A DNA stretch of 64,000 bases. Origin: Salpingoeca rosetta (Eukaryota > Protista > Choanoflagellata). The translations under genes were made by a program, and so were the position numbers. Each line of letters opens with the position of its first letter. The first letter of the stretch is position 1. The notes beneath the pieces are model-generated. The model was given only the letters and a program-made list of their open reading frames with translations. It was not told the origin of the DNA and did not search any database. The stretch lies in assembly GCA_033442325.1 (NCBI GenBank), contig JAWQFM010000007.1, forward strand, positions 1,600,225-1,664,224, read 5' to 3'. Positions 1 to 44,391 of this stretch are shown here, piece after piece.

Positions 1-544
1 CCGCACAACGCAGCAGACACAACATTGGGCACGGCACTGGCAGTGCAAGTGGTAGCGGACACATACGCGAGTTGGTGGCGCTGATGTGGAGCGGCGTCGA
101 AGCAGCGTCGGTCGCTTCTGCACAGGCGAGAATGGAGACGGTGAGATGTGCCACCCAGATACAAGACACAGGCAGATAGATAGACAGACACACAAGCACA
201 CACACACAGACAGACAGAGAGAGAGAGACACACACACACACACAGATAGATAGACAGACACACATACGCACACAGACAGACAGACAGACAGATAGACAGA
301 CACGTACACACACATACACATAAACATAAACGCAGACAACGGAAGCACCCGTTTACAGGCGCACAGTCCGCACCTTTGGTGCCTGCTCGATAAGATGAAT
401 GCCGCGCAGGGAAACGCGAAACTCAAACGTTTTCGACGCGCTGTACCGCAGCCGCTTCCGGGCAGCAAGGACCTTGAGAGGCAGGAGGGGAAGGGGTGGC
501 ACGTGTGAGAGGATAAGCAATGTAGGGAGGAGAACGAAACAGGC

Positions 545-2235: not shown

Positions 2236-2837
2236 ACAAGAGGTGCAAATGGATTTGACCAGTTTGCAGGCTTTCTTTTCTTCTTCGTCTTCTCGTGTGT
2301 AGCTGCTGTTGCCGTTGATGATGTCGGCTTCTCTGCTTCAGTCGGGTGGTGCGCCTGGTGTGATGTCGATGTACCGTTCGGTTCTGGTGTGTGTGCTTTC
2401 TCTCTGTCGTTGGCGGTGTCTTCTCGTATTCTTCTGTCCACATTGACTGTGTGATTATCCTTTGCGGTCCCGTGGGATTCTCGCCCATTCCGTGTCTGTG
2501 TGCGGGCAACATGGTGAGCAGCGACGTCGCCTTCACCATGGTGAGCGCGCACACCTGTCTCATCGCCATCGTCAAAGTTATCGTCATCACCACTATCGTC
2601 ATCGTCATCTTCATTGTCGTTGCCGTTGCCGTTGATGCCTGGGACACGTGACGAGGGAGGCTGCGCTTGCGCTTTTTGTTGTTGTGCCGAAGAAGATGCT
2701 GTTGTTCTTCCAGCCATCAGGTCGATGACCTCGTCGTCATCATCGCTGCTGCTCCCGCTTCCACTCCTGCTCCCGCAGCTCATCGTCGTCTTGTGGTGTT
2801 GCTCTCGCCGCTCGTCGGAGAGCGCTGAATGCGACAT
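1..2837 (-). CDS. SH3 + two MIU-like ubiquitin-binding motifs + PTB/PID adaptor protein (multi-exon; 3' end runs off the window)
   Basis: Spliced exons (~1937-2837, 1712-1747, 1445-1529, ~960-1173, ~652-860, ~372-472) give the SH3 'FTAAYDYAAREVDEVDLHKG|DLLYVVEMGPDG|WYIGLNITTGVQGTFPGNFV', the motifs 'DEELARRLQAQEE' and 'DEDLARQLQEEE', and the PTB start 'FTVRFLGSLNVP...AIRE|VLAARKR...VSLRGIHLIE'. The start codon is uncertain (2837 or ~2783). Confidence 0.75.
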
Positions 2838-3210
2838 GACAAGGCGCAGCAAAATTTGAGGCTTGAAAACAGCGGAAAGTCTTCCGGCATTTCTCTCTTG
2901 CCCATTTTCCACAAAGACAACCCACGTGCCACACCAACCAACCAACAACTACAAGGTCAGTGGAACACACCTGCTGCTTGCCGTTGCTTCCTTCCTCTCA
3001 CCCTCTCTTTGTCTCTGTCTATATCTCTCTTTCTGTCTATCTCTCTCTCTCCCTCTCTCTCGCGCGCTCTCTCTCTTTGTATCCCTCTCTCCCTCTCTCC
3101 CTCTCTCCCTCTCTCCCTCTCTCCCCTCTCTCCTCTGTCAACCTTTGTATCTTTACGTCTTCCTCCCTTCCTCCCTCTTGTTCGTCTTCTCTGTGCTGCT
3201 TTGACCATGG

Positions 3211-3320
3211 TGGTCTTGTGACGACCCAGGCATTTGGCTTGACGTTTGTCGAACAACTTTCTGTTGTTGGATGACACTGATGAAAATGCTGGCTACCTAC
3301 CAACTTTTCTCTGAAGACCA
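3211..3320 (+). ncRNA. Box C/D snoRNA, snR13-like, copy 1
   Basis: C-like box GTGACGA (3218-3224), guide AGGCATTTGGC plus D'-like TTGA, C' CTGATGA (3277-3283), D box CTGA (3311-3314), terminal stem TGGTCT/AGACCA. The guide is complementary to the conserved LSU rRNA segment GGUAGCCAAAUGCCU. Confidence 0.85.
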
Positions 3321-3615
3321 ACTACCCCATGCGTCACCGTGATAATATTTCTTTTCTTGTACGCACTGTTCATGTGCTTGTGCATTGTTTGTGCTTTGTG
3401 AGTATTTTGAGCGTTGTGCGAGCCTTACGTGGCATAACGTTGTTGTTCATTTGCTTTCTTGCCGTTTTCGTTCGAGCGAGTATGGCAAACGCTTGTCTGG
3501 TTTTGTCCTTCGTTCAGTGTTCTTTCTTTTCTTTCCTTTTCCTCGCTTCATGATGTGACCTTCGTCGTTCTTTCCCTTTGTGATGATGATCGCCCTCTGT
3601 TGTACCGCTGTGCTT

Positions 3616-3725
3616 TGATCTGGTGACGACCCAGGCATTTGGCTTGACGTTTGTCGAACAACTTTCTGTTGTTGGATGACACTGATGAAAATGCTGGCTA
3701 CCTACCAACTTTTCTCTGAAGATCA
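3616..3725 (+). ncRNA. Box C/D snoRNA, snR13-like, copy 2
   Basis: Core identical to copy 1 (GTGACGA 3623-3629 to CTGA 3716-3719), with a different terminal stem TGATCT/AGATCA. Confidence 0.85.
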
Positions 3726-3880
3726 TACGCTCAGCGCCCCTGGTGCATGTTGGCGCTCATTGTGACCTCACGTCTCCATTCTTCCTGTTAGCGCCCTGTC
3801 CCGTTTGTTGTTCCCTCCGTGCTGCTGCAACCGGCAAGAAGCACGAGTTTTGCTTTGCCTTGTCTCGTGCACTGTGTTTC

Positions 3881-3996
3881 GGGCAATCTAGTGACGACCC
3901 AGGCATTTGGCTTGACGTTTGTCCGACAACTTTCTGTTGTTGGATGACACTGATGAAAATGCTGGCTACCTACCAACTTTTCTCTGAAGATTGCCC
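3881..3996 (+). ncRNA. Box C/D snoRNA, snR13-like, copy 3
   Basis: The core differs by 2 nt in the internal hairpin (gtccgacaac vs gtcgaacaac). Boxes at 3891-3897 and 3984-3987; 9-bp terminal stem GGGCAATCT/AGATTGCCC. Confidence 0.85.
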
Positions 3997-4521
3997 TTTA
4001 CACCCCCCCCCCCAAATCTTCTTTGCTGCTCTCCTGTACTCAGCCGATTTTGCACGTCCAACCACGTGACTCACCAATACCTGTATTGACCTATCGTCTC
4101 TTGCACAGAATTGTCGAGGACGGATTACATATAACTAAGGCAGTGTCTACTTCACGATTCAGAAGCGAGGAGCACATACAAGACCAAGATTTGGGGGCTG
4201 ACCATATTTGTCAAGAGGCAGCTCACGCCTGCCCAGTTTCCTACATCTCTATTCTGACGGCTTGCTTTGTTTGTTGGGTTGCTCGTGCGTTGATTGTTGT
4301 GCTTGCCACAAGCACGTCACTTCCGCAATGGCGCGACGTGGTGCTCAATTAAACAGCTCAACAGCGTGTGTGTATACAACGCCAGCAATTGCAACTTGAG
4401 AAACGGGTGCGTGGAGCATACGTGAGCATGATGCGGTGATGTGACTTGTTTGCTTGTTCCACCTGGTTGCTGGTTCGCTTGCCTGCATTTCCTGCCTGCT
4501 TTGTTTATCCGTTTGTGGTTG

Positions 4522-4948
4522 TCATCGTTGCTTGTGAAGGACATACGCATACCCAGTGCCCAAGTGGAAGCTAGCCGCCTTTTCCACACGCACACGCGGC
4601 TGTGGCGACGGTGCAGCACTGGCATTTGCATCTGTCGAGGCATCACAACCGCCCTGCTCGTACTGGCGTGTCGCATCGTCGACGATGGCGCGAATGTCGC
4701 GGTCCCACCAGCAGCCCCAGCGCGCAGCGTGACACCGCGCCCGCCAGCTCAGATACAGGCTCACGGGCGGCAGCCAGTGCGATGTGCCGTGCTCCAGCAG
4801 CAGCACCTGCCATCGTGAGCGAGTGCGTGCGTGCATGCGCGCGCGTGTGTGCGTGTTGTGTGAGGGAGAAGGGTGGGAGGGAGTGGTGGTGTCAGCATTG
4901 TGGGAGTGGGAGCGACAGAGGGAGACAAAGGGAGTCACCATCGTGAGA

Positions 4949-5027
<79 letters not shown>

Positions 5028-6678
5028 CGTGCTTTCACACATACCTTTCCGCCTGGTTTGCACACGCGAAGCATCTCGCGGAGGGCAGTCACGGGGTCAT
5101 CAAAAGAGCAGAGTCCAAATGTGTCGACAACGGTATCAAATGTGTTGGCGGGAAAAGGCAGTGCCTCGGTCCCGCCAGTCAAAAAGTCGACTGCAATATT
5201 CGCTTCAGGCTGCTCACGGCTGCCAGCGTCGTGTACGTTGTCTGAGCTTGCTGCACCTGTCTCTACTGTGTGGTACGCAATGGTGTGGTGCTGTGGTGCG
5301 TGTGTGTTTGTGTGTGTGTGTGTGTGAGTGTGTGTGTGTTTGTGTGCATGGCGGTTGCGAGCGACATGTCAGCGAAAGGTGCACAGCATGAGATCGAGAC
5401 AGCAACACAACCAGTTGCGGTGAGTCAGGTGCATGAAGCGAGGCAGAGACGGCAAGGAGACCTTGTCCAGCGAAGCCAGACACAAAGACACACAGACACA
5501 GACACAGACACAGACGCACACACACATACACACATACACACACACACAACAGACACAGACACAGACACAGACACAGACAGACAGACAGACACACACACAC
5601 ACACATAAATGCTTCCTGAACGCACAGGGTGTTGGGTGTCAAAGTCCTGTACAATGGCCCTTGCCTCCTACACGCGACAAACCAAGGGGAATTGGATCTG
5701 AGCGAAACGAGGCAAGCCGCAAGTACGTGGCGTGTGCTGCACATGCTGATGCAGTGTCGCTCGCACATGCGCGCATGCGTGTAGCAAGCGGACAAAGCAG
5801 AGAGGCAATGCGGCTCTCGTACGTCAATCATGGCTTGGCTCTGATCGCACAGGGTGAGCTGCGACACGGCCGGCGGGTAGAAGGGCAGGTTGCGCGCCGT
5901 GCCAGCCGCCACCTGCGATTGTGCAATGAGAAGTGGGTGGAGGTACATTTGAACGTGTGTGTGTGTTGATGGTTGTGTGCGTGTGTGCGCGTGTTGATGG
6001 ATGTGCAGTACGTGTGCGTGAGTGTGCGTGAGTGTGCGTGTGTGTGAATGGTCACAGATGTGCACGGGTGCGTATGGATGTGGCTGTTCACATATGCAAG
6101 CCGACAAACAGTAGTAACACGTACATGCACACAAACACGGACACTTGGGTGCACAGTGAACGAGCGGAGCACCTCGAGGACGTGGCCGGCTGCGTGCTGC
6201 TGCAGGAGCTGTTGTCGCTGCTTGAGCACGCCCGTCGATCGTTCAGAGCTACACAGGACCGATCGCGGAACAGAAACGCACAGTGCGATGTGTGTGTGTG
6301 TGCGTGTGCATGTATGTGTGCCCCAGTGGAAGGAAAGGCAGAAACAGCAGCCATAAATGGCCGACGCACACTCGGACATGTTCCACGTCCGCTGAGAGCC
6401 ACACAACCCCAGATAACGCTACTCACTCGTGGATATCCTTGTCATAGCTATTGGCAATCGTCTCCCATGTCTCTCGTCGTTCCTGGTCTGTCACCTGATG
6501 ACAGCGTTGATGTGAGGTCACACAAAGCACGCGTTAGCAACTGCAGCGGATGTACAACAAAACGAGAAACAAAGCACATGTGTGCACATTCACACAACCA
6601 ACCACGAAGGCAGCTACGAAGGCAGCCACGAAGGCAGCTACGAAGGCAGCCACAAAGGCAGCCACACAGGAACCCCCC

Positions 6679-43256: not shown

Positions 43257-44391
43257 CTGTGTGTGTGTGTGCCTGTGTGTATGTGTGTATGTGTGTATGT
43301 GTGTATGTGTGTGTGTGTGTCGATATCACCTCGCACCGTCGCCCTCATCACTCATGCTCGCATCATGCCCGCACGCTGCACATGATACCCTTCCTTGCTT
43401 GTGCACGGTTGCAGGGCTTGACAAGTGCGCCTTGAGGACGTGTTTGCGCTGGATGCACTGCTTTGCACGTGTCATCAGTGAACAGGAGGCGTTTCCTTCC
43501 ACCCTCACCCGCGTCCTGGTGCGACACCGCAATCCCCGCACATGCTCACTGGTCTCCGTGTTGCGCACTGTGCGCATGTGTGCACTCTGTGTGTGTGCGT
43601 GCGTGTGTGTGTGTGTGTGTGTGCGTGTGTGTGCGTGTGTGCGTGCGTGCGTGTGTGCGTGTGTGCGTGTGTGCGTGTGTGTGTGTGTGTGACACGTGAC
43701 TGCAAGCCTTTCCCCTCACATGTTTGTGTTTCTGTTGTGCTTGTCAGGATGAGCCAGGGCGCGTGCACTGCGTCACTTGGATCAGCACTGCCACAACCCT
43801 CCGCAAGGTGTGCGTGTGTGTGTGTGTGTGTGTGTAAGAGTGGGTGGGTGCAGGGCAAGTAGTGAGCGCTCTGACTCACCTTGTATCACGCCCTCCTTCA
43901 CACAGGCACAGGCCCTTGTGAAGACTGCGTTTCGGCAAGAGCCGCAGGCTTGTCCGCCCGCCAACAGCAGGGAGCCTGGTCTGCCGACAACCAGCACAGT
44001 ACTCGTCAGAAGCACGCCTCCAGTCAAGCGCGTCGCTGCGTGCGGTGTTGTTGGCGGTGGGGATGGCGCTGCCAACAGTGCGCTTGACGAAGAGGTGCAG
44101 GCTGCTTTCAGCCAACCGGACGCGAGCGAGGAAGGTGTGGGCGTGGCAGCGACAGCATCGGCGGTCTCGACAGCACCTGCGCGCGCCATCGCAGTTGGTT
44201 TCTGCCATGATGGAAGCAGTTGTGGGGCAAGTGGCCTCAAGCAACGAGGGGCGCTGGTGAGACAGCGTGCCAGTGCCCTGAGCAGCACAGCGAGCAGCAG
44301 CGCCAGCAGCGACAACGAAGGCGATGATGATGAAGACGACGACACGGATGATGACGACGCACTGCTGGTTCGCGCTGCAGGTTCACACTGA
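40265..44391 (+). CDS. Cyclin E-like protein with long S/T-rich N-terminus (multi-exon)
   Basis: Cyclin box 'RLRARVFHWLADVCD...TLFFAITYFDTY...MQLLACACLRLAAKIE|E...LTDGAC...ELDLAAVLKWRL...TPLHW'. 'TDGAC' and 'LKWRL' are cyclin E hallmarks. Confidence 0.8.

Follow-up and report, generated by a model that had tools for sequence, protein, structure and literature searches.

A predicted, triplicated box C/D snoRNA with an snR13-style D' guide for a conserved AAA site of LSU rRNA in the choanoflagellate Salpingoeca rosetta

Introduction

Methylation of the universally conserved AAA site of large-subunit (LSU) rRNA is known from yeast, human, Arabidopsis and Dictyostelium (PMC3511168, PMC8817022). 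In yeast, L2280 and L2281 are both methylated from the single D' guide of snR13. The D' box acts as UCGA (4 nt) for L2280, at position 5, and as CUCGA (5 nt) for L2281, at position 6, and extra base-pairing is required for efficient methylation of the two sites (PMC5389607). The guide of snR13 is among the shortest, and the rRNA targets of the guide and of the extra pairing overlap (PMC3116282).

The same conserved site is targeted by SNORD15/U15 (RF00067; human U15A/B, Arabidopsis U15), an RNA of about 146 nt. Two sites are served by this RNA, the third A by the D guide and a G further downstream by the D' guide, as described for the dual-guide U15 of Arabidopsis (PMC8053127). For U15, too, extra base-pairing is on record (PMC3116282, PMC8053127). 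Furthermore, U15 is multi-copy in some species; the chicken survey found three copies in RPS3 introns, and predicted that the same A is served both by a 3'-guide U15 and by a distinct 5'-guide RNA (PMC2653536). Published accounts of how these families are related differ: Hoeppner and Poole placed AtU15, U15a, snR13 and snR75 in one Rfam clan (PMC3511168), whereas the Neurospora survey paired U15 with snR75 only (PMC2780460). In the open literature searched, no description or catalogue of choanoflagellate snoRNAs was found.

Here, a stretch of 64,000 nucleotides of the Salpingoeca rosetta genome (the window) was analysed. A first-pass annotation made from the sequence had proposed that it holds an snR13-type guide, kept in a holozoan, homogenised and amplified three-fold.

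Results and Discussion

Anatomy of the Triplicated RNA

A 97-nt core running from box C (GUGACGA) to box D (CUGA) was found on the plus strand of the window at 3218-3314, 3623-3719 and 3891-3987. The cores of copies 1 and 2 were identical, and that of copy 3 was changed only at the adjacent positions 3924-3925, from GA to CG. The three-fold core had been described in the first-pass annotation, and it was borne out both by the sequence and by a genome search. In the S. rosetta assembly (55.4 Mb, 68 contigs), the core matched the three copies and nothing else. Similarly, the motif GGCATTTGGCTYGA occurred genome-wide at the same three sites only, and its reversed control gave 0 matches.

The features of the units are listed in Table 1. 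All three copies had a box C with one deviation, a box D CUGA and a closing stem of 6-9 bp, and the terminal stem directly adjoined boxes C and D. In addition, an internal C'/D' pair (UUGA and CUGAUGA) was bridged by a hairpin, and an rRNA antisense element of 12 perfect pairs ended at D', with position 5 on the target. From these features, the three units are predicted to be copies of a box C/D snoRNA. When kink-turn geometry was applied, boxes C and D could give the tandem G.A/A.G pairs, a C.U mismatch where U.U is normal, and a G-C pair.

Table 1. Features of the snoRNA cluster, its surroundings and the related loci. Positions without prefix refer to the window; nt, unit numbering with 3211 = nt 1.
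Feature	Position	Strand	Remarks
snoRNA copy 1	3211-3320	+	6-bp terminal stem UGGUCU/AGACCA included
snoRNA copy 2	3616-3725	+	6-bp terminal stem UGAUCU/AGAUCA included; core as in copy 1
snoRNA copy 3	3881-3996	+	9-bp terminal stem GGGCAAUCU/AGAUUGCCC included; core variant at 3924-3925
Variable base before box C	nt 7	+	U, G, A in copies 1-3; first loop base of kink-turn
Box C GUGACGA	nt 8-14; 3218-3224, 3623-3629, 3891-3897	+	one base off RUGAUGA (fifth base C, not U)
D' guide AGGCAUUUGGCU	nt 18-29; 3228-3239, 3633-3644, 3901-3912	+	12 Watson-Crick pairs with LSU 2927-2938
D' box UUGA	nt 29-32; 3239-3242	+	5-nt form CUUGA from 3238
Internal hairpin joining D' and C'	nt 38-62; 3248-3272	+	predicted fold
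C' box CUGAUGA	nt 67-73; 3277-3283	+	from sequence directly
D spacer, 27 nt	nt 74-100	+	from sequence
Accessory guide UGGCUACCU	nt 80-88; 3290-3298	+	9 perfect pairs with LSU 2923-2931
Box D CUGA	nt 101-104; 3311-3314	+	preceded by spacer ACCAACUUUUCU
Long ORF-rich gene	ends near 2800-2950	-	divergent from cluster
CT-rich compound microsatellite, ~170 nt	2977-3150	+	directly upstream of copy 1, between it and the divergent minus-strand gene
Methyltransf_11 gene	exons ~4522-5182	-	other flank of cluster
LSU rRNA gene	L007:5834-9824		located in S. rosetta assembly
5.8S rRNA gene	L007:4772-4953		located in S. rosetta assembly
SSU rRNA gene	L013:1501-3596	-	located in S. rosetta assembly
U15/SNORD15-type snoRNA	C27:544239-544377 (= L033:1501-1639)	-	RF00067, 47.6 bits, E 2.5e-8

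Guide and rRNA Target

The first-pass annotation had described an element antisense to LSU rRNA, placed by the D'+5 rule on the A equivalent to yeast Am2280. In an exhaustive ungapped scan of SSU, 5.8S and LSU rRNA, nt 18-29 formed the sole perfect duplex of at least 12 bp, with LSU 2927-2938 (AGCCAAAUGCCU), confirming the antisense element on the rRNA of the organism itself. The guide target in S. rosetta LSU rRNA reads GCCAAAUGCCU. Counted from UUGA, position 5 fell on A2932, the middle A of the AAA, and position 6 on A2933, the third A. By the register given in PMC5389607, A2932 is the equivalent of yeast A2280, in agreement with the earlier assignment; A2933 is the equivalent of yeast A2281 and human A3764.

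A snoscan-like script was run over both strands of the 64-kb window. It recovered the three units and one weak unrelated candidate, indicating that the combination of boxes, stem and guide was not background. The weak candidate (44324-44391, plus strand) was a 68-nt box C/D-like sequence closed by a terminal stem of 4 bp. Next to its box D, the 10-mer GCAGGTTCAC was antisense to SSU 2074-2083, close to the 3' terminus of the 18S rRNA; the match may be due to chance.

The D spacer contained a second antisense element, the accessory guide. Its target overlapped that of the D' guide by 5 nt, and the match was the sole 9-mer match of the D spacer anywhere in LSU rRNA. When the spacer was shuffled, 9 bp within 25 nt of the target was reached in 61 of 20000 shuffles (p ~0.003). 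The rest of the D spacer (ACCAACUUUUCU) formed no duplex of at least 9 bp in SSU, 5.8S or LSU rRNA, the rDNA spacers, U2 or the U6 fragment. The U6 snRNA model had its sole genome match at C9:815095-815166 (L040), covering model positions 1-68 of 105; the U6 gene may be interrupted, or this copy may be truncated.

Two further observations concern the rRNA just 3' of the target. The segment LSU 2939-2957 (L007:8772-8790) reads CGTCATTTAACTGGTGACGCGC and differs at three positions from what we take to be the yeast and human sequence. Box C GUGACGA was itself complementary to LSU 2939-2944, which adjoins the guide target on its 3' side. With the consensus GUGAUGA, pairing at this place would also be possible, through a G-U pair; with the unusual C, the pair is Watson-Crick. 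This complementarity of box C is probably a by-product of the rRNA sequence.

Comparison with snR13

The RNA shared several features with snR13 (RF01223). In both, the guide next to D' was directed to GCCAAAUGCC and put the last two adenosines of the AAA at positions 5 and 6. In both, the D' box lacked the 5' C and was preceded by C, being UUGA/CUUGA in S. rosetta and UCGA/CUCGA in yeast. Moreover, the rRNA target of the accessory guide overlapped the guide target, and the D spacer was without a methylation target. With the (C)UUGA that answers to the yeast (C)UCGA and the overlapping accessory guide, the likeness to snR13 was stronger than the first-pass annotation had claimed. The two RNAs were also different in several respects. 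The second position of D' was U in S. rosetta but C in yeast, and box C in S. rosetta was GUGACGA. S. rosetta had three tandem copies, whereas snR13 is a single independently transcribed gene, and a U15-type guide coexisted in the S. rosetta genome.

No support for family homology came from Rfam. Models for snR13, SNORD15 and snR75 were absent from the results at the gathering threshold for the window, and at E<=10 for 1.6 kb and for the 117-nt unit. Furthermore, the snR13 covariance model RF01223 (gathering score 47 bits) gave no match at E<=10, whether the window, the 117-nt stretch alone or the genome was searched. The matches obtained (purD, Tombus, SNORD38 and SNORD74) were attributable to chance. 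Since no Rfam model matches, those of snR13 and SNORD15 included, homology with snR13 is unproven. Of the proposal that an snR13-type guide was kept in a holozoan, the layout (register, C-UUGA, accessory guide) is supported and the family homology is not. Moreover, given the separate U15-type gene, "kept" may mean an old snR13-type lineage or convergence.

Metagenomes were scanned with the pattern GTGAYGAN{1,12}GGCATTTGGCTYGA. The 18 loci obtained were all chance-like and lay in bacterial-type coding DNA, with about 20 chance matches expected by a rough estimate. None of the 18 had a stem-closed D box or the accessory element.

Alternatively, the RNA may be specific to its lineage and have reached the snR13 design by convergence, without descending with fungal snR13 from a common ancestor; this is a serious possibility, somewhat short of an even chance. 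The silence of RF01223 suits it, and all shared features are determined by the target, GGCAUUUGGCU and UGGCUACCU being simply antisense to rRNA. Since the rRNA sequence dictates the guide, the D' context and the accessory element alike, common ancestry with fungal snR13 is not required. The internal hairpin and the 3' ACUUUUCU are segments of the RNA that are not complementary to rRNA. In the Neurospora survey, U15 was paired with snR75, and snR13 was without plant or human homologues (PMC2780460), which is also in line with convergence. Against convergence, however, the match to snR13 involves several features together: the register, a D' box without its 5' C following a C, and an overlapping accessory element in the D spacer (PMC5389607, PMC3116282). 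The first-pass annotation also gave yeast snR13 a GCTACCT element and an ACTTTT..CTGA end as likenesses; a shared 3' segment of this kind, not determined by the target, would likewise speak against convergence.

Methylation Guide or Other Function

Judged from its anatomy and complementarity, the triplicated RNA is likely to be a functional methylation guide for the conserved AAA site. The C at position 5 of box C and the lack of a matching Rfam family weigh against it.

The RNA might instead bind rRNA without methylating it, acting, for example, as a chaperone of folding or as a competitor that sets the timing of access for the U15-type guide and the neighbouring m5C enzyme. Its target does overlap that of the U15-type guide. 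In addition, the accessory and guide targets overlap, making full simultaneous pairing impossible, as noted for snR13 (PMC3116282). However, the guide adjoins D' in the canonical register, the C' box and the bridging hairpin are present, and the yeast counterpart of the RNA has been proven to guide methylation (PMC5389607). A purely non-methylating role is thus improbable.

Terminal Stems and Conservation of the Copies

The terminal stems were perfect in all three copies (Table 1). In a gap-free alignment, the three inner pairs were invariant, and the next three pairs varied on both sides with pairing kept. Structure cells were paired in 89.5%, against 25-58% when the 3' partners were slid by 1-3 columns. 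The probability that 12 of 12 non-shared outer pairs would be Watson-Crick by chance was ~6e-8. Furthermore, the folding z-scores of the units ranged from -2.9 to -5.2. In the 150 nt on each side of the cores, the similarity between copies was at the level of shuffled sequences. The earlier description of unrelated flanks, with each copy closed by its own perfect stem (6, 6 and 9 bp), was therefore correct. The independent maintenance of the outer stems argues that each copy is under selection for processing.

The core changes had been said to fall in an internal hairpin that still pairs, as covariation evidence. The two substitutions of copy 3 turned a G.G mismatch into C-G and an A-U pair into G-U, so the hairpin still pairs, and better than before. 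They do not compensate each other, since both lie on the 5' arm. The covariation evidence comes from three paralogues of one genome, and it is limited to these because no orthologue from another species was retrieved.

The copies would be decaying or silent duplicates, or a functionless short repeat, on a reading that the one-base deviation of box C could favour. This is very improbable, as the boxes, guide and accessory element were intact in all three copies, each of which holds a different yet perfect terminal stem, and the cores were 98-100% identical while the flanks were saturated. The identical cores between saturated flanks suggest that gene conversion has acted on the snoRNA alone, or that constraint is very strong. 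The first-pass annotation had called the cores homogenised, which is reasonable, and we infer that they may have evolved in concert. Retroposition as the origin of the copies was rejected; A-tails were absent and the stems differed among the copies. The triplication in itself is unremarkable, and the gene is of an ordinary kind.

A Separate U15-Type Gene

A separate U15-type gene on the minus strand of C27 had been missed in the first-pass annotation. The RF00067 match there was below the gathering score of 75 bits and covered the full model. In this RNA, the D' guide after GUGAUGA, AAAUGACGAG-U-CUGA, is complementary to LSU 2937-2946 and places position 5 on G2940 (the yeast Gm2288/snR75 site). 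The D guide GAGGCAUUUG-U-CUGA pairs with LSU 2930-2939, with position 5 on A2933 (the yeast A2281/human A3764 site). This was the dual-guide layout described for Arabidopsis U15. An internal 10-mer was complementary to LSU 2981-2990, and it may serve as an accessory pairing like that of Arabidopsis U15. The D' guide AAAUGACGAG fitted the local variant of the LSU sequence, a small case of guide-target agreement.

Compared with U15, the triplicated RNA targets the same AAA site, is multi-copy as U15 is in some species, and has an accessory element as a counterpart to the extra base-pairing of U15. However, it uses a D' guide for the site, whereas U15 uses its D guide for the third A and its D' guide for the downstream G. 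RPS3 is the host of U15 in vertebrates; in S. rosetta, RPS3 is on C3 and the U15-type gene on C27.

With a U15-type dual guide on another contig, the triplicated RNA is taken as a second, snR13-style guide and not as the U15 orthologue. That it is the choanoflagellate SNORD15/U15 orthologue after all is largely refuted and scarcely credible: the AAA site is shared and databases equate snR13 and U15 by target (PMC3511168, PMC2653536), but RF00067 misses the triplicated RNA even at E<=10 and matches the C27 locus instead, the U15 layout (D' guide to the Gm2288 equivalent, D guide to the third A) is found at C27 and not in the triplicated RNA with its D' guide, and the two RNAs have nothing in common beyond the boxes and the antisense guide.

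On the strand of the U15-type gene, and 300 nt upstream of it, lay a SNORD96-like box C/D snoRNA (L033:1943-2026, minus strand; 30.6 bits, E 0.0045). The two are separated by a GTGAGC that resembles a splice donor, suggestive of a host gene whose introns carry one snoRNA each.

Genomic Context and Possible Host Transcript

The snoRNA cluster was on the plus strand in an intergenic gap, and the nearest recognisable genes were both on the minus strand (Table 1). The CT-rich tract upstream of copy 1 may be a pyrimidine-rich promoter or first-exon region, as far as its composition and position suggest. Candidate splice sites were present on both sides of the cluster, AAG|GTCAGT at 2955/2956 for the 5' site and TTGCACAG|A at 4108/4109 for the 3' site. 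With these, the whole cluster would lie within a single intron of a non-coding host, which is unproven. In spacer 1, the sole GTGAGT was at 3398-3403, and by eye no AG was seen between copy 1 and this GTGAGT. A separate intron for each copy is therefore unlikely.

The arrangement was similar to that of the tandem snoRNA clusters of plants and green algae, which have near-identical head-to-tail copies on one strand with short unrelated spacers. Those clusters lie in a single intron or a non-coding host, whereas in S. rosetta the host is only a candidate and the protein genes on either side are encoded on the other strand.

Proposed Mode of Action

The three units would be active as one box C/D snoRNA of about 100-110 nt. 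The copies would be co-transcribed from the plus strand, in a non-coding host transcript or a polycistronic precursor, and each unit would be freed from the precursor with the help of its own terminal stem. Boxes C (GUGACGA) and D (CUGA) would then form the terminal kink-turn, the internal hairpin would bring D' (UUGA) and C' (CUGAUGA) together, and the copies would assemble into box C/D snoRNPs. Once the 12 nt ahead of D' have paired with LSU 2927-2938, fibrillarin would 2'-O-methylate A2932. The 9-nt accessory element would boost the short primary duplex by pairing with rRNA that starts slightly upstream of the target and extends into it.

The D' box has no 5' C and follows a C, which is also the case in yeast snR13, and A2933 would, on this analogy, probably be methylated too. 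On the other side, there is a U15-type guide for A2933 in the same genome, and the role of the triplicated RNA at A2933 may therefore be redundant or absent. Methylation of both A2932 and A2933 by the triplicated RNA is possible and is proposed tentatively.

Conclusions

The locus is a clean and well-supported snoRNA example in the closest living relatives of animals. An snR13-style solution, with a short guide, a D' box without its first C and an overlapping accessory guide, is seen outside fungi, beside a conventional U15-type gene. It may be that S. rosetta keeps two guide lineages for one rRNA patch, a U15-type dual guide comparable with plant and animal U15 and fungal snR75, and an snR13-type D' guide that has an extended D' box and an accessory guide; on the present sequence comparison we advance this with reserve. 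No general principle is altered by the locus. If the snR13-style guide is truly homologous to fungal snR13, the design and the two-site trick would predate the split of fungi and holozoans, and the snR13 design would later have been lost or replaced in animals. The main point of interest is the coexistence of snR13-style and U15-style guides for adjacent adenosines in a close relative of animals. It bears on the relations of snR13, snR75 and U15 (Rfam clan CL00045), and on how adjacent nucleotides become methylated. If the second guide is indeed of the snR13 lineage, the way in which two snoRNPs share neighbouring adenosines could be tested directly in the genetically tractable S. rosetta.
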